In this document: piece after piece, positions 35,092-49,183 of the stretch | Numbering within the stretch: the stretch's first letter is position 1 | Layout of the letters: every line of letters begins with the position of its first letter | Assembly (NCBI GenBank): GCA_001643675.2 | Contig: LSRY02000031.1 | Coordinates: 558,001 to 622,000 of the forward strand | Length of the DNA: 64,000 bases | Direction: 5' to 3' | From: Monocercomonoides exilis PA203 | Lineage: Eukaryota; Protista; Preaxostyla | The notes under the pieces: generated by a model | The model's input: only the letters and a program-made list of their open reading frames with translations | Told to the model about the DNA's origin: nothing | The model's database searches: none | Position numbers and translations under genes: made by a program

Positions 35092-36865
35092 TTAAAAATC
35101 TGAAAATCTGAAGATATTGAGAGAAAATGAAAGAGTGAATGAAAAAGGAAAATTTGAAATCATTTTGACATTTGAAGAGCAAATAGCGTTATTTTATTAG
35201 AAAACAAAAATTTCAAATTTCAAATTTTGTAAACACAAAAAATAAATATACGCAAACCTGACAGCTTTTCTAACAGAACAAGTGTATCCTTCTTTGAACT
35301 TGTATGCGACAATTGGTTTTGTCCACGCTGCACTTAAAGGCTGAAGGATTTGTGAGATCTGATGTTGAGCAGCGGATTGAGGATTTCGAGAAGAAGAAGA
35401 AGAATAAGAGGAAGAGGAAGAGGAAGAAAAAGATGATGCTGAAGGAAACAGTTTTGATAGGTTATTTAATTCTTGTCTCTTGTTGTTGAAAGGAGAAGAA
35501 AGAGAAGATCTATTTGAAGATATCGCATTTTCACTGATATTCTGCAACTGCTCTACGGTTTTCATTCCTTCTTTTTCTCCTTCTTTTGCATTTCCTTCTT
35601 TTCCCTCATTTCTATTATTAACATCTTTCTCTTTCTTCTTCTCCATCTTCTTCATTATTCCTATTTCTGCTCTTCTCATCTGCTCAATCTCTATCAAATG
35701 TGACAGAAGCTGTTTTTTGCTTGAAGGCAGATCAGCTTCGGGGTTCAGCGTCATCAGCGGATTAAGTTGACTGGGAAAAGGTTATATTAAAAATGGCAAA
35801 TAAAAGAAAAGAAAAATGTAAATTTCCGAATGAAAAACATGACAGATTATAAACAATTCAATCAAAACAGCAAGAAAAAAATATTTTTCGTTTTATTATT
35901 TCTATTTTCATTAATCTGGTTTTTCATTTCTCTCTCCAAAAAATAAAATAAAATAAAAATAAAAATTATATTTTCATTCAATCTCTCTTTCTCTCAAATA
36001 TAAAACATACGGTTCCATCACATATTCAGCCCCAGCCTGTTTGAATGAGATGCCATAGTCTGCAAAAATAGCCACAACACGCTGCAAGCCGCTCTGCTGT
36101 GTAGAAGTTGAATACATCATGGCCGTGTCTGAAGAGCCATCTTTCTTTGCATTGAGGAATGATAAAGAAGAGGCAAGAAGAGAAGAAGAAGAAGAGGAAG
36201 AAAAAGAAGAAAGAATGGAATTTGCATTTGAAAACGAAGTATTTGAAGTGTAAAGCGGGGGGAAACAGATCAGAGGCAGATACTTCAGAATCTGCTGAGC
36301 AGACGAAAGAGAAGAAGAGGAAGAAGGCTGCACTGTGAATGAAGCCGAGGTGGTAAGAGCAGAAGAAGAAGACGTGTTGATTCCACATTCGCCACTCACA
36401 TAGGGACGAATATGCGGTTGGATTCCACTCAAAAAGCGACGAAGGCGAGAAAGAGAGTCAGACACGGCAAAGGAAAGATCTCTGAGGAGGAAAGGAGGAG
36501 GAGCAGTGAATTGATGGTGGGAAGGAGAGGGAAGAGAAGGTTTTGAGTGGAAGAGAAGAGAAGAAGAGGAAGAGGAGGAGGAGGAAGAAGATGATGAATA
36601 AGTATCTGTCTTTTTTTGAGAGGCAGAAGGAGTAGCTGCAATGTGGAAGCGAGCAGAAAGATAAGGAAGCAAGCGAAGAGACGAAAAAGACTGTTTTGTC
36701 TTTGCAGAACGGGAAAATGTGTCAGAAAACGAGGCGATTTCGTCAAGTTCAGACATCACTTCCAGCTGGTGGAGTGTTTGTGAAGGGGAAAGAGTAGAAT
36801 AAGAAGAAGAGGAGGAGGAGGAAGAGGAAGAAGAACCGAAAGAAGAAGTCTTTTGTGAATTGAAT

Positions 36866-36900
<35 letters not shown>

Positions 36901-37321
36901 AGAAGAAAACGATGAAGATGACGATGAATAATTCTGCTGATTTGGATTCCATTTGTGGAAAGCATATGGAAATGAGCACCACATCCACTCCATCACTCTC
37001 TCTGGCTCCAAAGAGACAGATGCCGAAGAAGAAGAAGAAGTCGTCGAAGACGATGACATTGTCAAAATACGCGAAATATCCTCAAAATTGCAGAGAATGT
37101 TTGGAGTGAAGACTAAATTGATGATGTCAAACATGCCAAACCGGGAAAACTTCTGCAGTTGTTCTCTTCTTTTCTCGGCTTCCTTCTGCTTTTCTCTTCT
37201 TTTTTTCTCTTCTTCAATCGCTTCTCTTTCTCTCTCCATTCTCCTCATCTGCCTTTTGTTCCGCAGAAAGAACACATTTCGCCTCGCATCGCTCATTTTG
37301 AGTATTTCATCCACATTTCCA

Positions 37322-37356
<35 letters not shown>

Positions 37357-40300
37357 TTCATCTTCATCATCATCTCCCTCACTTTCTTCTCCTTTCCCTT
37401 CTTTTCCTCCTCCTCCTCCTCCAAGAATCCTCCTCCTTCCAAACTCCATCTCTTCTCCTCCATACACTTCCTTATCATCGTCTCCATCGTCTTCTTCATC
37501 TTCTCCTATGCTTCCATACCTTCCACTCAACGATTGAATAATAATCTCTCCATTTCTATTTCTCTTCCTTTTCTCCTTCTGCTCCTTCAAAATGTCAATC
37601 ATCTTTCGCTCTTCTTCAGCTGCTTTCTTCTTCTCCTTCTGCTCTTTTTCAATTTGCTTTTGTTTCTTCTTCTTTTCTTTCTTCATTTTGCCTTCTTCAT
37701 CACCTTCCTCTTCCTCTTCTTCACTACTACTGCTGCTTTCATCATCATCCTCTTCTTCCTCTTCCTCTCCTTCCTCTTTCTTCCTCTTCATCTCCTCTTC
37801 TTCCCCTTCCTCTCTGCACCCCCTCCTCAGCTGTATCTCATTCAAAACTGCTCTCACATCTCCGTTCTTCTCCTTCAAAAGAGCATCACAGCCAGAAATG
37901 CTAAAAGGAAGGTTCTCCTTCTGGCAGATGAACTGAATGCGCTTGAGAAGAGGAGAAGAAGTGTATGTGATCGTTGGGGTGAGCAAGGAGCTGGTGAATG
38001 AAGAGGAAAAAGCAGAAGACAAGTACAAAGACGAACGGAGAAGAGAAGAAGAAGAAGAAGAAGAAGAAGCTCTTTCGGGTGTTGCAAAGGGCTTAAATTG
38101 GAGATGGCGGGCAACGCGAAGAAGAGGGCGGATGAGGGGATTATACGGATCGTTGCAAATGATGATGATGGGACGAGACAATTGTACATAATTATTCTTT
38201 TGATTGGACTTTTTGTTGAATTTGGAAGCAAGTGAAGTTATCTTCATTCTCTTTTTTGCTGAGGCTTTTTCATTCTCGTCTTCATCTTCACTGCTTGAAC
38301 TTCCTTCGTTTTCTTCTTCTTCTTCTTCATTTGCACCTTTATTCCCCTCCTCCTTCTGCTTCCCTCCCTTTTGCCCCTTTGCGCCCCCTTTTCCTCCGTT
38401 CTCTCCATTCTTCCTCTTCTTCTTCTTCAGCTTCCCTTCGCACAAGTCAACAAGCATTTGTATTCCTCTCACTTCTTTCTCAGTCGAGCGCAGCGCATCC
38501 AGCTCATCCACAATCACACACACTGGCTTCATCAGCTCGCTGGCATCCAAAGTGACTGATGTTTGAGAAGAAGAAGAAGAAGAAGAGAAGGAAGAAGAGG
38601 AAGAGGAAGATGAAGAAGAAGAGAAAGGCAGTATATTCCTTCTGGTTGCATTCAGCTTCAAAGACTCGCTTTCCACAATGTCCAAAATCTTCTCTGTCAG
38701 ATTGCTTTCTCTCTCTCTCTCTCTTTCACCTCCATTTTCTCCTTCTCCCTCGTTTCTCTCCACTGCAACAAGACTGCTCCCTCCCTTTCCTCCTCCTCCT
38801 CCTCTTCTGCCTTTCGCCTTGTCCTTCGCAGAAGCCTCTTTGTCTTTCTTCCTCCCGCCTGCCATTTCATTCGCATTCACATCAACCACACGATACCCTG
38901 CATGCCTCGCTATTACACGTGCAGCTGTCGTCTTTCCTGTGCCTGGGGGGCCAGAAAGAATGACAATCTTGTTTTAATATAAATGAGAGAAAGAGTGAGA
39001 AAGGGAAAGAGAAAGAGAAAGAAAGAAAGAGATAAAGATAAAGAAAGTGAATTTAGGAATTTGAAAAAAAAATTATAGAGTTATTTTTTTGAGAAAGGGA
39101 GTATGGGTTGATATTAATTAATTAAATGTTTATTTGTTTGTTTGTTTGTTGAAATAGATGATTACGATGGTTGGTTACAGCATGATGAATAATTTGAATG
39201 TCAATTTGTTTCAAATTCACAATTTCAGCAATTTCAAACGCGCATTTCAGATTTGAGAAATAAGTGAAAAAAGAAAATAAATGGTATTTAAAAAAGAAAA
39301 TAAAAAAAAGATTATGTTAAACATATCAAACAATAACAGTGAAAAAAAAATATCACACCTTTTGAATTGGCCTCCCATCTTCGCCCAGCAATGTCTCATA
39401 TTCCGTAGGCGGCTGATTCGCCTGTTTTCCATCTCCGTTCTTCCACCCGCCTCTCCACCCGCTGCCTTCAAACTTCCTCTCACCTCTTCCTGCCATCTCA
39501 CCCTGCTTATACGGTCTGTTAGCTTGTTCGCCTCTGAAATTTGTGCTTTCTCTTGTTCCTTCCTCTGCCTCCTCCTCCTGCTGCTGCTTTTGGAGCGCAA
39601 TGACCTTCTCGCTCGTCTTCTTCTGGTTTCCGAAGAATCCTGAAGGAGACTTAGCTGAATACGGAAGAGACGAACTCGAAGGCAAAGAAGAACGATAATT
39701 GGTCTGCGGAGCGACTGCTGAGCTTCTGCTGCTGAGCTCATTCGCCTTTCCTGCCTGGAAACTCCCTGTTTTTCCGTATTTGCCGCTTCCTTTCCAACTC
39801 TCATTGCTAAATTGCCCTGTTCTTTCTCTGGTGAATCCCTTGTAATCACCTCCTGCTCGTGTGTTCCACTCAAATTTGCGAGGAAAAGGTGCATTCAGCG
39901 GACGGGGCTTAATAGAGAGAGGCCTGTGAAAGGCTACAGGATCCCATGTTTTCAGCCATCGGAGCAGTTCCACATTCAAATCCTGATAGTTTTGATAAAA
40001 GTTAATGTTTGGCATGTATAAGCAATCAAAGAAATGGAAAAAAATATAATTTAATTGCAAAGAATATTATTCAATAAAAAAGAATTTATAAAAAAAAGGC
40101 TTATATAGCATCTAAAAGCATTCATTTTCAGATAAATAGCATATTATTCCATACAGGATTTGTTATAAGTTCTGAAAATTTTCGAGGTTCATATTTTTCA
40201 ACAAGCAAACGCGAGGCATCGTGCAACTCTAACTTTTTTCCAATTGGAATGCTTTTTGGATCATTTTGTTGCAACTTTGAAAATGCAGTTTTTTCTCTTT

Positions 40301-41610: not shown

Positions 41611-42508
41611 TTATAGTGTCAACTTTTTAATGGGACTTTTTCCTTAATTGGCACTTTTTATGTTTTTGCTTACAAAATGTCGAGAAACGAGAAGTTGTTT
41701 TCAGCATTTTACAAATCCTTTTTAACAGGTTTAATTCTATTTATTTACTGTTTTCATTTTTATTTTCGTTTTTTTACACATCGAGAAATTTCGTTTTTTT
41801 GCTAAATTTAATAGGACTTTTTCTAGCCAACCAGGCAACTCAAAAGAAATTGGGGACATGTTTTATATTGCATTTGCTTCGAACGATTAATCTTTAAAAC
41901 CTTTTTTTTCACAAACACCTTTTTCTTGATTTTTTCGCATTTCAAATTCTCATCAGCATAAAAAACATAAAACTGTTTATTTCTTTATTAATATAATGAA
42001 ATGAAAAAAATAAAAAAATGATATGAAAAACAAATACTTTGATAATGAAGTGTTGAAAAAATAAAACATTCTCATTTTCTATTTGTCTCAAACTGACAAA
42101 TGGCGCTTACTAAAAATGATCAATGATCAAACTTTTGTAACGAAGTTAAGTTAGAAACAAAAAGAAAATGAGAATGTTTTATTTTTTCAACACTTCATTA
42201 AACAAGAAAGTGGAGAATCAATTCCTTCTCTTATTTGAGAGACGCCACAATCTATGGGTCAGTCGCCCATTTGTGTGTTTTGGTGTATTGGATAAAAAAC
42301 CACTTTGCGCTTATAAACCCATAGGCGCAAAGAGAAGGAACTACAAAAAACACGAACAGTTTTGAAAACAAAACTTCAAAGGGTGGGAGTGAAAACGGTG
42401 GTGGGCAAAGAGAAGGAATTGATTCTCCACTTTCTTTTTTAATTAAAGTGCATAAGCACCTTAATTATCAAGAAAGTGTTTCATCAATTCCTTCTTTTAT
42501 TTGAGAGA
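41611..42508. repeat. Left inverted arm of the element
   Basis: It mirrors 46724-47621 with a constant coordinate sum of 89232 (no indels). Only one mismatch was noticed (42496/46736). Confidence 0.95.
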
Positions 42509-42513
42509 ATCAA

Positions 42514-45438
42514 TTAGTTGGATGATGAAGCCATCATTACTACCACAATGTGCGTCCTCTTTGCTTTGTTGCTCTCATCCTCCTTTTTTGCTTGTGATCT
42601 TGTTCGAATAATGAATCGCTCTTTAAGTGACTTCTGATTCTCCATCTCCTCATCAGGCTCATCCACTCGAGAGGGAAATTCAACAGTATCTCTAGCTTCT
42701 TCCTCACTCAAACATGGCTTCATCAGGCGCTTCTTGTCCCTCAGTACCATCCCAGATTCCATTGCTCGTATATCATTTTTGTTCCTCTGGTCTCTTTCTG
42801 GACTGGCGTACGCATTGCCACCATCTTCGGAACACAGCTTGGTTGCTAACTCTTCACTGGGAACGTTCATAGTTGAGGCAATCACTTTCCACAAGGTTGA
42901 AGCAAGATTGGCCTTCACATAATGCTTCACCAAAGTGTCTGTTCTAGGGGAAAGACGGGCAAACTTCGCAATCTGAGTTGGTGGAATTCCAGACATCGTT
43001 AGCGTTGAAAGTGTTGCATCCTTTGTTGAATAAGGAGTAAAATGGCTTTGAATTCCTGCTTCCTTTAACGTCTCCTTTGCTAATCGTCTGATGCCTTCCA
43101 CTGTTAGAGGCTGAAAAGTTTCGGTATTTAAAAACAATTTATTTCCATCTGGTCTTCTTCTTTGTATTTCTTCCCACAAAACCTGAATAGCCGAAACTGG
43201 GCAAATTGTCGGGTTTTCATTTAAAAAAGGAACGGCAATCTCTGTTCGATTGAGCGATGTTTTGAGCCTTGTGTCCAAGTTTATTCTTTCCTGCTCAAAT
43301 ATGGATCGTTCCATATCTACCCTTTCCAACTCTGTAAACCTGCACGCAGTGAATAACATGGTGAGCACAATGGCTTTCATTGTCAGATGTTTGAAACTCA
43401 AGCTTTGATTTTCTCCAAGATTAGAAAAGTATGTCAAAATGGTCTTCGGATTCCAGATCTCTTGAATCTTCTTATTTCTTGTCGTCTCCGTTCTTCTAAA
43501 CCCTCTAAACAATATTTTTATTATCGGAAAATCCCCTAAATTTGTGTTGTAAACCAAGCTTGTGAAAAATGAAACTGCTGAGCGGATGAGCTGCAAACAT
43601 GACAGCTTCATTCCATTGTCTCTAAGTGTAATAAATATGCTGGAACATCGAGCTGCCCACTCGTGAATATCCTCTGGAATTATGCCCATATCACTCTTTT
43701 CCCACTGTTCTCCAAAGTGTGCGAAGCCGAATAAATATCCATCCCACGTCGACTGAGCAATTCCCGATATGCACTCCTCTGCCAATGAAACTGGGAAAGA
43801 TCTTTCTTCCAAAGCCCTTCTCCACCAGCTCTCGCCTTTAACTCTTGTGGATTGATCAATATGACTCTTAACCGGCCTGGAGGAAGACATGCACCTGTGC
43901 TTGCCATTGATGGTCCCTTTCTCAGTACTGTTCTCAGACTCCTCCATTCGAATGTCCGATGAGGCGTCTTCTCCAATAGCACATCCCAGTTCTGCCCATT
44001 CCAGTTCGGCAAGAGTAATACTACTGGTACTCTCTCCTTCTGTGCCTTCCGAATCGTCATTGGTATCAGGGGAACTGGGGGGTGTGCCAGAACGCACTCT
44101 TTCTTCCATGGATATGCTAGACCGTCTTCTCCCAATGGGCTTCCTATTCCACGCCAACGCTCGACCTTGTGGTTGTGTTGAGCTGCAAAGGCGTCCATTG
44201 TTGGAGTAACTTATAGCACCACAAGAATCTGAGAGAGTTCTTCGTCTGTAATTCTGTAGCCTCCAACTCTTTCCAGGCGGGACAAAGCATCGGCTCTTGT
44301 GTTTTGTTATCCGGGGAGATGAACTGCTTTCAGGACTATTTTCAATTTCTCCTTCAATGTCCATATCCTTTTGAGTGTTTGACGGAGATTCCTTCCTGCA
44401 TTCCATCTGTTCACGTTGAAAACAACTGTTGAATTGTCTGACCGAAGTTGTATCTGTGATATCCGACTTTCTGATAGGATTGGGGCAAAGTGAGTTAATG
44501 CAAGTTCCACTGCTTTTAATTCTCTGTAGTTGGATGATTGGTTTTTCACAGAGAATGGAAAACGACTGTGACAATCTAGTGACATTCTGTTTATTCTGAG
44601 GGCTGCTCCCCAGGAGCGTTCTGATGCATCTGTGGTTAGAACTGCTTCTGGAATAAACACTGGATTTAGTCTGCGTCTGGTATTCTTCCTCAATGTCCAT
44701 CTCCATCTTCTTATCTGCTGGAGGATTGAAGCATTCAGCCTCATCATTCCATCCCATCCGTTTGTTAAAACTCCTTTCTGCAACAATTTGAAGATTGATT
44801 GGAGGTGCAAAAATGCGTCTGGCAGAACGAAGCGTGTAGAACTGAGCTTTCCCACGAATGATGCTAAGTCCTTCTCTCTGACAGTCTTGGCTCTTATGCA
44901 CCTTCTCTCCCACTTGTGACACAGCTCTCGCACTGCCTTTCTTCTTTCCTCCGTTAGACACACATCGAAGCTGGTTGTATTCAATTCGAATCCCAGGAAA
45001 CTGAACTGCGAACTCGGTATGAGGTTGCACTTCTTCGTGTTTATCTGCAGACCAAGACTTTCCAAAAATACGATTATCTCCTGTATTATGTTCTTCAAGA
45101 TTTGCTGATCTTGATGCAGAAAAAGAAGGTCGTCCAAATAGGCAATGACTCTGACATCCCATCTTCTTCTTATCTCCGCTGTCACCTTCCTCATTATATG
45201 TGTGAACAGGCGCGGTGCATCTACAAAGCCGAAAGGCATTCCTTTGAAGGAGTAGTCTTTTCCCATGAATCTGAAAGCAAGATTGGGAATTAGTTCTCTT
45301 GAAACTGGAATTAAATAATAAGCTTGTTCCAAGTCTAGGGATACTGCGTAATCCTTCCGTCTTATCAGCCGTTCCACTGTTTTCTCTCCGTCGCACTTGA
45401 AATGTGTTCTTTTCACCACTGCATTCAGTTTCCGACAA
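42514..45438 (-). CDS. Tyrosine recombinase ORF of the DIRS-like element (YR domain in the C-terminal ~400 aa; N-terminal part overlaps pol)
   Basis: Contains a SAM-like ISGIAQSTWDGY segment, then IRSAVSFF, IWNPKTIL, LTMKAIVLTMLFTACRFTEL (catalytic R), RLKT (K), ICPVSAI, FTPYSTKDA and LVKHY (catalytic Y). The true start is unknown. Confidence 0.85.
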   Translation of the reverse strand: MSETECSGEKNTFQVRRRENSGTADKTEGLRSIPRLGTSLLFNSSFKRTNSQSCFQIHGKRLLLQRNAFRLCRCTAPVHTYNEEGDSGDKKKMGCQSHCLFGRPSFSASRSANLEEHNTGDNRIFGKSWSADKHEEVQPHTEFAVQFPGIRIEYNQLRCVSNGGKKKGSARAVSQVGEKVHKSQDCQREGLSIIRGKAQFYTLRSARRIFAPPINLQIVAERSFNKRMGWNDEAECFNPPADKKMEMDIEEEYQTQTKSSVYSRSSSNHRCIRTLLGSSPQNKQNVTRLSQSFSILCEKPIIQLQRIKSSGTCINSLCPNPIRKSDITDTTSVRQFNSCFQREQMECRKESPSNTQKDMDIEGEIENSPESSSSPRITKHKSRCFVPPGKSWRLQNYRRRTLSDSCGAISYSNNGRLCSSTQPQGRALAWNRKPIGRRRSSISMEERVRSGTPPSSPDTNDDSEGTEGESTSSITLAELEWAELGCAIGEDASSDIRMEESENSTEKGTINGKHRCMSSSRPVKSHIDQSTRVKGESWWRRALEERSFPVSLAEECISGIAQSTWDGYLFGFAHFGEQWEKSDMGIIPEDIHEWAARCSSIFITLRDNGMKLSCLQLIRSAVSFFTSLVYNTNLGDFPIIKILFRGFRRTETTRNKKIQEIWNPKTILTYFSNLGENQSLSFKHLTMKAIVLTMLFTACRFTELERVDMERSIFEQERINLDTRLKTSLNRTEIAVPFLNENPTICPVSAIQVLWEEIQRRRPDGNKLFLNTETFQPLTVEGIRRLAKETLKEAGIQSHFTPYSTKDATLSTLTMSGIPPTQIAKFARLSPRTDTLVKHYVKANLASTLWKVIASTMNVPSEELATKLCSEDGGNAYASPERDQRNKNDIRAMESGMVLRDKKRLMKPCLSEEEARDTVEFPSRVDEPDEEMENQKSLKERFIIRTRSQAKKEDESNKAKRTHIVVVMMASSSN

Positions 45439-45809
45439 TCGAGAATTTGTCTCCAGCTGCCTGACTTCTTTTGAATGAGAAATACATTGTTTCTGTGTTT
45501 GACCTCTCTCTGCTCCATTGGGATTACAACTCCTGTTCGTATTTGTTCTTCTAATATTTTCTTGAACTCCTTGATCTTTTGTTGGTTGAGAAGCAACGCT
45601 CCGTCTCTAAATTGAGTTTTGCTGAGAGCTTTTCGGGCTTGCTTGCTCTTCCACATGGCCTGTACTCCTCTGCTTATCAATTTCTCTCCTCCGATTCGCT
45701 TCCATGCCGAGATAATCAATGCTGTTCTTCCTCCTATCTGCCTCCTCTGCTCTGTCTCCTTGTGAACTGGACCCAAAATTGTTGACGCCCCCTTGGTCTC
45801 CTGCTCCAA
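43680..45809 (-). pseudogene. DIRS pol: reverse transcriptase - RNase H - N6-adenine methyltransferase-like domain, interrupted by two in-frame TAA (44307-44309, 44211-44213)
   Basis: RT motifs are WRQILDCRKLN, SLDLEQAY, GMPFG and AYLDDLLF. RNase H motifs are LTTDAS, SSNYREL, RSDNST and HLPG*QNTRADALSR. MT-like motifs are MDAFAAQHN, DGLAYPW, LAHPPVPLI and LPNWNGQNW. Confidence 0.85.
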
Positions 45810-46684
45810 CCGCTCTGGCTCCTCCTTCTTCCGAATTGCTGTCTTCTTGCGAGCGCTGAGGACCGGGGGGACCTCCGAAAAAACCGCGGGTTTGAACGAG
45901 GAAGGGGATAACTTAATCTTGTTCGAAGTGTATCTGGTTATTCTCTTGCAGTAGTCTGAACTCGTGTTAGAGGAAATGTTGGTCTTCGGAAACCTCCTTC
46001 AAACTTAGCTTCTTGTCTTGCTTCTCTGAGAATCAGTTCCTGTCTCTCTATGAGGATTCCCGTTGAATCGTCTGCACTCATTAATGTGGCAGCCCTGAAA
46101 CCAAACCTGCATTGAATTCGAACCGTTCGTGCCTCTTGAAGCGCCTTGGTAATCAAAATCAAGATGTCAGCCAGTCTTTGTTTTGCACCTTCCTTTGAAG
46201 TCGGTATCTCGGCTAAGCCTATGAGCGCAGCTTTAATTGCCTGGAAAAGATAAATCTCCATCTTGTAACCCGCCTGATCTAACGCATCGTTAATCCAGTT
46301 CTTTGTTCTCTTGGAAGCGGGTGGTTCTTGAGATAACAATGGGCTAAAATCCTGTGTTGAATACTCCTCAACAACATCTTGGACGGATATAGTGGAAAGC
46401 TTTAGATCATAAATTGAAAAATTTGGCGCCTTTCCAAAAATGTCCTCAAACTCCTGACAAATACGTTGAGACATCTCTATGTCATCTTCGTTTTCCTTTC
46501 TGGCATCCGAATGGGTCACCTCCTGTGTCAAACTTTCCGATGACGAAGGTGAAAAAATTGACGCGGAAGATAAGATGTCCTGTTGAGAAAAGGTCCCTGG
46601 TTGGCTTTGCGCCCCACTGTTCTGCATTGCAGCCTCAGCCGACGGCGTAAGTCCAACAATCGGAGAGAATTGTGAAAAAGACAT
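45734..46684 (-). CDS. Gag-like ORF1 of the DIRS-like element, with one in-frame TAA at 45938-45940
   Basis: A 248-aa ORF begins at the first ATG inside the arm. The same frame continues past the TAA with an Arg-rich tail (PRFFRRSPR..FGRRRSQSGWSRRPRGR..RGGR*), as is typical of DIRS gag ends. Confidence 0.65.
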
Positions 46685-46723
46685 TATTGATCAAATGTGG
46701 CGACTGACCCATTGATTGCGGCG

Positions 46724-47621
46724 TCTCTCAAATAATAGAAGGAATTGATGAAACACTTTCTTGATAATTAAGGTGCTTATGCACTTTAATTAAAAAAGAA
46801 AGTGGAGAATCAATTCCTTCTCTTTGCCCACCACCGTTTTCACTCCCACCCTTTGAAGTTTTGTTTTCAAAACTGTTCGTGTTTTTTGTAGTTCCTTCTC
46901 TTTGCGCCTATGGGTTTATAAGCGCAAAGTGGTTTTTTATCCAATACACCAAAACACACAAATGGGCGACTGACCCATAGATTGTGGCGTCTCTCAAATA
47001 AGAGAAGGAATTGATTCTCCACTTTCTTGTTTAATGAAGTGTTGAAAAAATAAAACATTCTCATTTTCTTTTTGTTTCTAACTTAACTTCGTTACAAAAG
47101 TTTGATCATTGATCATTTTTAGTAAGCGCCATTTGTCAGTTTGAGACAAATAGAAAATGAGAATGTTTTATTTTTTCAACACTTCATTATCAAAGTATTT
47201 GTTTTTCATATCATTTTTTTATTTTTTTCATTTCATTATATTAATAAAGAAATAAACAGTTTTATGTTTTTTATGCTGATGAGAATTTGAAATGCGAAAA
47301 AATCAAGAAAAAGGTGTTTGTGAAAAAAAAGGTTTTAAAGATTAATCGTTCGAAGCAAATGCAATATAAAACATGTCCCCAATTTCTTTTGAGTTGCCTG
47401 GTTGGCTAGAAAAAGTCCTATTAAATTTAGCAAAAAAACGAAATTTCTCGATGTGTAAAAAAACGAAAATAAAAATGAAAACAGTAAATAAATAGAATTA
47501 AACCTGTTAAAAAGGATTTGTAAAATGCTGAAAACAACTTCTCGTTTCTCGACATTTTGTAAGCAAAAACATAAAAAGTGCCAATTAAGGAAAAAGTCCC
47601 ATTAAAAAGTTGACACTATAA
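46724..47621. repeat. Right inverted arm of the element
   Basis: It mirrors 41611-42508. The ORF track shows an identical 65-aa ORF on opposite strands in the two arms. Confidence 0.95.
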
Positions 47622-49183
47622 CTAATATTTCAATTTGTTCAATGGTTGGTTAATGTCAAATGCTTCTGAATTTAATGAAAAATTATTTTTTTATTTGTCT
47701 CATTGCTATTGTTTTTCAAAAATGATTGATTTTTATTCTGTAAGAAAGAGCAAATTGCAGAAAATAAAAAATAGCTAGAATTGTAAATAACATAGAAAAA
47801 ATAAGTTGTATGTGCAAAAGATGAGCTGAATCGTCATTAAAATGGAAAAATCCATCGAAAGTTAGATTTTCAAAAAACAAAAATTATTTGTTTCTAAAAT
47901 ATATAGGACTACAAAAAAAATATTGTTTTTGAATAGATGTGGGTGATTATTTATGATATCATATTATTTCATTTTAAAATTTCGATTGTAAAATTTCACT
48001 TGAATATTCATAAAAGAATACTGAAAAGTGATTTTACTAATTAAAGATGTCTTCATTTTCATTTTGGCTTTTTCATTTGTTTATGAAATGGTTTTGATGA
48101 AATCTTTCATCAAAATACAAAATCTCTATTCAGTGACAAACAACCTTTGAAAAATAAACACTCCGAAAAAAGTTTTGATTTCAAAAATATTCATACATGC
48201 CATATATATGTTTATATACAACCGTGCAAACTGCTGCAAATTAATATTGAATATTTGTTTCGATATTTGTATTTCATATTTAGTCATGATAAGAAAAAAG
48301 GTTTAATTAAAAACCACCATAACATCTTTTTCAAGCGTTTCTGTCCTGAGATTTTTGAATAATATATTTAATTTCAATTTGAATTTTATTAGAAACTTTT
48401 TATTTATTAATTTATTTTTGAATTGAGATGGAATTCATAAGAAAAATATAATCTCGTTCGAAAAGATTATTGAACAAAAAACAAATTATAAATAAAGATA
48501 TTTCATTCTGCAAACAAAAAAGTCTTTAAACCTTTAAAATATTGCTTAGTTTTAAATATGAGTTTCTTTCATTTTTATTATTAATTTGGTGAAAAATTAC
48601 CCGTACCAAATGAACAAAATTTAAATTCCAAAAAGTTATATTTTCAAAAGTTCAAACCTTTTGGATTTGGTTTATGAAAAGAAGTGAATCAAAAACCTTT
48701 CAAAACATTAAAAAAAAATCCCCAATTTGAATGAATGCATTATTCTCTTATCCTTTGTCAATCTCATTTTCTTACAGATAACAGAGATGACTGCCATCCT
48801 CCCATTCTGCATTCTCACTGTGTGAAAGAAAAATAAACTGTTGAAAATGACAAACGTGAACGAAAAAAAGAATACCCCAATAATACTGAATTTGAAACAG
48901 AAATCACCAGGTGTGTGCCGATTGGGAAAACTCCAGTGGTTCCAAGGAAGAAAGTGAAAGCCTCATCATGGCTCGGGACGAAGAATGCAGCGAATGACAA
49001 TCCACTCCCGAAAGCATGAATCTGATACGGCAATGCTGTTTTCTTCCCAACGAGACACAAACAAAGGAAGGAATTGCTTTCAAACAAACATTTGATTCTT
49101 CTCATCCAACATTCTCCCAGCTCCACTTTTCAATTCCCCAGGTTTCCCAAATGCATTTCTCAAATGAAAAAAAAATCAGTGTT

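Follow-up and report, generated by a model that had tools for sequence, protein, structure and literature searches.

The window, a stretch of 64,000 nucleotides from a Monocercomonoides exilis PA203 contig, contains an element whose minus strand carries three open reading frames (ORFs) in the order putative gag, reverse transcriptase (RT)/RNase H, tyrosine recombinase (Table 1). The RT is of the Ty3/gypsy-related type (Pfam RVT_1), with a weak RNase H-like Pfam match in the same ORF, and a tyrosine recombinase is present in place of a DDE integrase (Pfam Phage_integrase; E = 5e-8, with a score of 33.4 bits where the cut-off is 27.1). The N-terminal third of the recombinase ORF overlaps the RT ORF in another frame. 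At E <= 0.01, Pfam gave no methyltransferase match for the ORFs between RT and recombinase, and no gag family match either. Judged by these domains, the coding core is that of a tyrosine-recombinase retrotransposon. A feature search of the ESM Atlas returned generic eukaryotic RT clusters and nothing else, and a search of the literature on Monocercomonoides and DIRS found nothing. Read in the orientation of the element, the order of its parts is left extension, left ITR, ORFs, left ICR, right ICR, spacer, right ITR.

Table 1. Features of the locus, with positions in the window, strand, and the observation on which each assignment rests
Feature	Positions	Strand	Observation
Left arm of host foldback MITE	41614..42042	+	TA at 41614-41615; tip GTGTCAAC from 41616
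H1, the MITE center (innermost 52-nt arm segments and 54-nt loop)	42043..42200	+	Same center in six DIRS-free units
Integration junction, host ATT then right terminus (ATT|AAAC)	42197..42203	+	Form shared with 16 further left junctions, flank-TT|A-run-AAGAAAGTG
Right ITR (outer part of U)	42204..42274	-	Outer 29 nt (42204-42232) are the right terminus
Unique 133-nt spacer, interior of U, between ICR and right ITR	42275..42407	-	Conserved at 92-96%
Right ICR	42408..42439	-	Complementary to right terminus; the perfect 29-nt "U stem"
Left ICR: mini-hairpin (42440-42467) and core-end repeat (42470-42508)	42440..42508	-	Complementary to left extension and left ITR tip
Long ORF ending in tyrosine recombinase domain	42514..45438	-	Pfam Phage_integrase, residues 684-826
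Reverse transcriptase/RNase H ORF, 500 aa	44307..45809	-	Pfam RVT_1, E = 1.3e-29
First ORF, 248 aa	45938..46684	-	Putative gag from position alone; no Pfam match
Left ITR	46693..46762	-	Repeat comparison within window and across copies
Left extension (mini-hairpin copy)	46765..46794	-	Canonical copies stop here at ...GCACTTTAATT; right ends of 20 copies
Extra mirror copy, atypical for the family: inverted U (46796-47028), junction, inverted H1 (47032-47189)	46796..47189	+	Perfectly complementary to 42043-42436
Right MITE arm, perfect mirror of left arm	47190..47621	+	0 mismatches over ~430 nt; TA at 47617-47618

Several inverted repeats adjoin the coding core. By repeat search, H1 has 52-nt arms (42043-42094 and 42149-42200) that are 94% complementary around its loop; the hairpin lies where the earlier note had placed it, with arms of this length rather than a stem of ~43 bp. 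The segment designated U (42204-42436) ends, as had been described, in a perfect 29-nt inverted pair (42204-42232/42408-42436). The 28-bp mini-hairpin is also borne out: it has 12-nt arms with one mismatch around an ATAA loop and folds as single-stranded DNA (ssDNA) at -6.5 kcal/mol (z = -4.6), with 0 of 200 shuffles as stable. The core (42470-46762) starts and ends with one repeat, as had been read, present as an inverted pair (42470-42508/46724-46762) that matches at 38 of 39 positions. Folded as ssDNA, the interval 42030-42470 is predicted to form three hairpins in series, separated by 3-nt linkers (z = -16.5). A mirrored series on the far side of the core had been noted as well, and we find it to be an inverted repeat of 898 nt (41611-42508/46724-47621) with a single mismatch, at 42496; its outer edge, however, does not lie at 42030-42043, since the repeat extends 430 nt further outward to 41611. 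H1, U, the mini-hairpin, the junction motif, and the mirror copy are all real and far beyond chance.

We searched the organism's own genome (82.3 Mb, 101 contigs), found about 27-29 related loci, and mapped the modules on each. In at least 14 copies besides that in the window, U, mini-hairpin, core, and mini-hairpin follow one another in one orientation, directly succeeded by unrelated flanking sequence. All copies have 85-93% complementarity between positions 1-70 of U and the left ITR (46693-46762). The ITR pair is inverted, not the split direct repeats of PAT/Ngaro, and is 87-95% complementary in canonical copies. The left terminus of canonical copies is 96-100% complementary to the left ICR over 66-79 nt, and the left ICR has a predicted fold of -25.5 kcal/mol (z = -7.9). 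The right ICR and right terminus pair at 29/29 or 30/30 positions in most other copies, and the spacer keeps its orientation in all U-carrying copies. Comparison across copies shows that U corresponds to the right ITR, spacer, and right ICR and that the mini-hairpin with the start of the core corresponds to the left ICR; it likewise shows the end of the core with the second mini-hairpin to correspond to the left ITR with its left extension.

This arrangement is that of the DIRS1-like elements, in which, by definition, the ICRs are complementary to the termini and a divergent part of the ITR follows its own ICR; their extensions are complementary to the ICR only, and their termini lie on NTT, mostly ATT, with integration at an identical trinucleotide without duplication (PMC3266345). 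With these elements (Dictyostelium DIRS-1 and the set of PMC3266345) the present one shares RT/RNase H and a tyrosine recombinase, ITRs of ~70 nt, a long ORF overlap, two adjoining ICRs at the 3' end, one per terminus, termini on an NTT/ATT trinucleotide with no target duplication, and a divergent ITR part following its own ICR (GGAGAA versus TTTCAT at positions 10-15). It differs from them in having its extension, itself a 28-nt palindrome, on the left (5') terminus, where extensions have been reported in fungi and amoebozoa only (PMC3266345). It also differs in the 133-nt spacer that parts ICR from right ITR, in giving no methyltransferase match in Pfam, and, for the window copy, in a mirror duplication outside the family plan. 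The element is a DIRS1-like retrotransposon whose left extension is palindromic; it lies within a MITE and bears a local inverted duplication. The hairpins outside H1 are replication signals (ICRs and termini), whereas the H1 hairpin is host sequence. The ICR is essential for DIRS-1 retrotransposition, and in the model for DIRS elements the ends of ssDNA cDNA anneal to the ICR and are then extended (PMC7192593). This DIRS1-like family is now cleanly annotated, and its palindromic extension, perfect ICR/terminus pairs, and ~20 copies make the ICR/terminus system unusually legible.

A scan of the 82-Mb genome gave 52 exact matches to the junction motif, CACYTYA(N)TTA-N2-3-AAGAAAGTG, and 0 to a reversed control pattern, so the recurring junction form described earlier holds. 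All 52 matches fall within DIRS copies; a canonical copy has three of them, and the window has six. When a canonical right end is joined to a canonical left end, the sequence produced is identical to the reverse complement of the ICR, which identifies the recurring site as the circular junction together with its image in the ICR. These results support the identification of the motif (...CACTTTAATT|AAAAAAGAAAGTG...) as the circular-junction sequence of the element, with crossover at the NTT trinucleotide. In the copies, the left boundary always reads flank-(N)TT, then an A-run and AAGAAAGTG, and the right boundary always reads ...GCACTTTAATT, ending in AATT, followed by flank; across 17 junction pairs there is no target-site duplication, and the termini lie on an NTT common to the target. 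We rebuilt the empty sites of 15 independent insertions and compared them with the 24-position junction, using random TT sites in the window as a control. Rebuilt sites match the junction at a mean of 11.5/24 positions, compared to 7.8/24 for random TT sites, and 0/20,000 resamples reach the observed value, in a sample of surviving insertions that is biased to AT-rich intergenic DNA. This comparison supports the view that integration may prefer targets resembling the element's own circular junction, and it provides sequence-level evidence for such a preference. The part of the earlier proposal that makes the motif a crossover site of the recombinase is thus upheld by the NTT junctions and the target-site resemblance, but the part that makes the arm a cassette array is not.

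The DNA in which the element lies belongs to a separate repeat family. The interval 41612-42200 recurs in palindromic arm-H1-arm' units of ~1.0 kb at at least 40 DIRS-free loci; at least 40 units across the genome place the edge of the family at 41612-41615. Their tips read GGGTCAAC...GTTGACCC, with TA on most sides of seven units. In six DIRS-free units the arms are ~477 nt long and 95-99.6% identical (2-24 arm mismatches) around the same central hairpin. The arm-H1-arm family is a foldback MITE: its copies are short, non-coding, numerous, and dispersed, their terminal inverted repeats are conserved, and they have a TA target duplication. Its ~1.0-kb units, ~477-nt arms, 54-nt loop, conserved tips, and mostly TA flanks are those of foldback or palindromic MITEs with TA duplication; no autonomous partner or transposase was identified for the family. 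Comparison with the DIRS-free units shows H1 and the 430 nt outside it to correspond to the center and arm of this TA-flanked, ~1.0-kb foldback MITE, and H1 to be of host origin. H1 occurs without any DIRS and does not qualify as a module of the element, as it had been taken to be. Similarly, the degenerate site CACTTCATT-ATC-AAAGTA, which had been read as the outer edge of the array, is native MITE sequence, found in DIRS-free units as CACTTCATTAT(T/C)AAAG. By its boundary sequence, the DIRS insertion is at the ATT that ends CACTTCATT, adjoining the MITE center, and forms a normal left junction. In an ungapped comparison, the MITE integration site ranks in the top 2.5% of random TT sites for junction resemblance. 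We also considered whether the MITE is itself a DIRS-derived ICR relic, as its junction CACTTCATTATCAAAG resembles CACCTTAATTATCAAGAAAG, but set this aside, as the ungapped score reaches only that rank.

The window copy departs from the rest of the family in its mirror. It is the only one among all copies with a U-type site on the gag side (gag-side U, 0 other copies; H1, 0 other copies). Outside the hinge formed by the terminus/ICR repeat, the mirror extends for 829 nt with 0 mismatches, and the sole mismatch of the 898 nt lies inside the hinge repeat. By comparison, 3/52 positions differ between the two stems of H1, themselves the innermost parts of the arms of this MITE. The mirror is thus both unique and perfect. 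With 0 mismatches in the mirror, compared to 3/52 in the H1 stems and 2-24 in the arms of DIRS-free units, the right arm must have been overwritten. The mirror includes host DNA and the integration junction and is therefore later than integration; the arm had been taken for a record of serial site-specific integrations, and this composition makes it a post-integration inverted duplication instead. Conservative site-specific recombination is unable to duplicate host DNA in inverted orientation, whereas fold-back copying is able to do so. For this reason, we attribute the mirror to fold-back copying hinged on the terminus/ICR repeat rather than to serial integrations by the recombinase. The position of the lone mismatch is in line with this reading, because a copy tract beginning inside the hinge would leave exactly such a mismatch.

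Based on these observations, we consider it probable that a DIRS1-like element integrated in a foldback MITE and that one of its ends, together with host flank, was later mirrored onto its other end by fold-back copying. The minus-strand element would have integrated by a normal NTT crossover at the ATT beside the center of a ~1-kb MITE. A 3' end at the left terminus would then have annealed to its complement in the same strand, the left ICR, and its extension leftward along the template would have placed an inverted copy of mini-hairpin, U, host junction, H1, and the entire MITE arm on the gag side. By rejoining the right side through MITE arm homology, the product would have yielded the 898-nt near-perfect inverted repeat. 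The recurring site would on this model comprise the sequences used in DIRS replication to rebuild the termini and the place of recombinase crossover. The inverted repeat passes the TA flanks of the MITE by 3 nt (TTA/TAA; 41611-41613, 47619-47621), an overrun that may be due to chance (a few percent) or may mark the point at which the mirror copy ended. A stop 3 nt beyond the MITE TA is unexpected for free-running fold-back, so that a homology-guided return, or repair of a whole-arm heteroduplex, must be assumed. Two other origins were considered and ruled out. Insertion at the center of a pre-existing palindrome in the window does not account for a mirror that holds element sequence (U) and a second H1 loop, and sister-chromatid recombination between inverted termini would mirror a whole chromosome arm, not 859 nt.

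Palindrome formation and arm-to-arm conversion occur at inverted repeats in Tetrahymena rDNA and in yeast, by fold-back priming or template switching beside a short inverted repeat. As in those systems, a short inverted repeat with a non-palindromic spacer would serve here as the hinge, one side would be copied inverted onto the other, and step-like tracts of perfect identity adjoin the hinge. In contrast to them, the hinge is the terminus/ICR repeat of a retrotransposon with a 4.2-kb coding core as its spacer, and the copied sequence forms short interstitial tracts (155 bp to 2.9 kb) that do not reach a chromosome end.

Mirrored flanks are found beside the terminal repeats of other copies as well. 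On contig C80 (G000:C80:635000-654000; L037 and L040), a copy with a mini-hairpin at both ends and without U (L020) lies at the center of an inverted duplication, a palindrome of ~17-18 kb with arms of ~6.5 kb. The inner ~2.9 kb of these arms is ~100% identical and the outer part ~65-95% (about 90%), with a sharp step between the two, and the pattern suggests a near-identical step of ~2.9 kb inside an older palindrome. At a locus on contig C66 (L024/L028), the mirrored flank measures 155 bp. At a third locus, on contig C32 (L026/L029), a copy without U is flanked on either side by a truncated MITE unit; ~170 nt beside the element are mirrored and a further ~400 nt are directly duplicated, a mosaic that needs more than one template switch. 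Since C80 was copied in the opposite direction, no single polarity fits all loci. Taken together, these comparisons suggest that mirrored flanks beside terminal repeats are recurrent in the family, in either direction.

These loci led us to a more tentative proposal, that DIRS terminus/ICR repeats act as recurrent fold-back hinges, nucleating and homogenizing palindromes of host DNA that range from 155 bp to several kb at at least four loci. The copying may belong to replication or repair by the host, or the RT of the element may carry it out in runaway synthesis primed at the ICR. If this proposal is true, DIRS elements would be builders of gene-bearing palindromes. If the mirrored host DNA with its step-like identity tracts is real, DIRS termini would promote local palindrome formation, which is relevant to genome instability around tyrosine-recombinase retroelements. 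The recurrent DIRS-centered palindromes are the sole part of this analysis that merits follow-up.

For the mirror in the window, we weighed whether the copying could have taken place on a cDNA. In this scheme, transcription would read past the right ITR, through H1, and along the MITE arm, and the transcript would be reverse-transcribed. The first strand would anneal by its 3' end to the left ICR, as it does in a normal DIRS cycle, but synthesis would not end at the circular junction and would carry on until it reached the 5' end of the cDNA; homologous recombination with the mirrored cDNA would then convert the donor locus. The pairing of terminus and ICR on which the DIRS model relies for self-primed synthesis is exactly the hinge seen here, and DIRS-1 cDNA has been reported to be linear and single-stranded (PMC7192593); moreover, the plus strand of the window has the polarity of a first-strand cDNA, and its 5' part folds into the predicted stems. 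Against this route, an extra recombination step into the donor locus is required, and the C80 mirror runs the opposite way over ~2.9 kb of host DNA, a better fit to a DNA-level event. We therefore regard a cDNA origin as unlikely, and we favor fold-back copying during DNA replication or repair over copying on a read-through cDNA.

We also asked whether the mirror is a product of assembly. In that case the true locus would be arm-H1-DIRS-arm', with the inverted U and H1 contributed by the assembler or by chimeric long reads, and the left extension, ending ...GCACTTTAATT, would join the MITE arm ATCAAAGTATTTG directly. The public data over 41700-47690 consist of four runs from one study, in short unitigs of ~100-280 nt, some with a loxP linker from a mate-pair library. 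None of these unitigs spans the mirror, and, because of the symmetry, the mirrored and simple structures cannot be told apart by any 31-mer, so that a 99.9% inverted repeat is beyond checking by short k-mers. Two copies with identical flanks on different contigs (L014 and L016) suggest that the assembly is redundant in places. On the other hand, the structure spans only 6 kb and lies ~600 kb from the contig start, where ordinary long reads would span it, and its non-palindromic 4.2-kb center is unlike a missed-adapter fold-back read. Three other loci, on other contigs, have mirrored flanks beside terminal repeats of the element. An artefact appears improbable in light of these points.

The earlier note had interpreted the junction sites as delimiting cassettes (H1, U, and the mini-hairpin) that were serially integrated or are invertible and excisable, as in integrons and shufflons. 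The element has in common with integron attC and shufflon systems a tyrosine recombinase and hairpin-forming sites on single strands, and the junction is a plausible recombinase site, with a CACTTT/AAAGTG dyad and crossover at NTT. In addition, five copies lack U (L010, L012, L017, L018, and L020), and L009 (C21:774560-779149), with U, shares its left flank with L018 (C21:94876-99180), without U, while their right flanks differ. The common left flank implies at least one loss of U after integration. However, L010, L017, and L018 retain the right-terminus variant GGAG at repeat positions 10-13, followed by core sequence, which places the deletion breakpoint within the shared ~25 nt of the terminal repeat and not at the proposed crossover. 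Homology-driven deletion would thus fit the loss of U better than excision by the recombinase. The L009/L018 pair suggests that DIRS copies took part in an ectopic exchange or in a partial segmental duplication. Nor do the copies behave as cassettes do in integrons and shufflons: no U inverted relative to the core and no variable module order were found among the mapped copies, and none of the 52 exact matches in the genome represents a junction site apart from a DIRS copy or a free cassette. The motif scan and catalog of module order and orientation that the earlier note had suggested gave a fixed arrangement in all U-carrying copies, with an ordinary single ITR plus ICR plan for U, mini-hairpin, and core ends, which is the outcome it had named beforehand as counting against cassettes. 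With H1 belonging to the host MITE, three U-less copies broken inside repeat homology, and an inverted duplication of host DNA that is impossible for conservative site-specific recombination, the cassette-array reading is largely refuted by its own criterion, and we consider it very improbable. This removes a tempting but wrong integron-like reading of a eukaryotic retroelement.

Several further observations were made at these loci. L014 (C52:22683-27290) and L016 (C38:848823-853431) are identical in their displayed flanks on both sides; one of the two lies ~22 kb from a contig end, and the pair may represent redundant or haplotig assembly. L021 (C80:1302164-1306218) and L022 (C80:1338234-1342303) lie ~32 kb apart in opposite orientation, with similar flanks and the same internal gag deletion, and are probably part of a large inverted segmental duplication. 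On C66 (G000:C66:225000-230400; L038 and L041), the RT region of a DIRS copy is split by a ~5.3-kb insertion with 484-bp inverted repeats that are 98.8% identical. In the window itself, positions 36500-38650 hold a dense purine-rich (GAA/GAG) tract and its complementary low-complexity counterpart, with many imperfect inverted repeats, and this region may encode acidic repeats.
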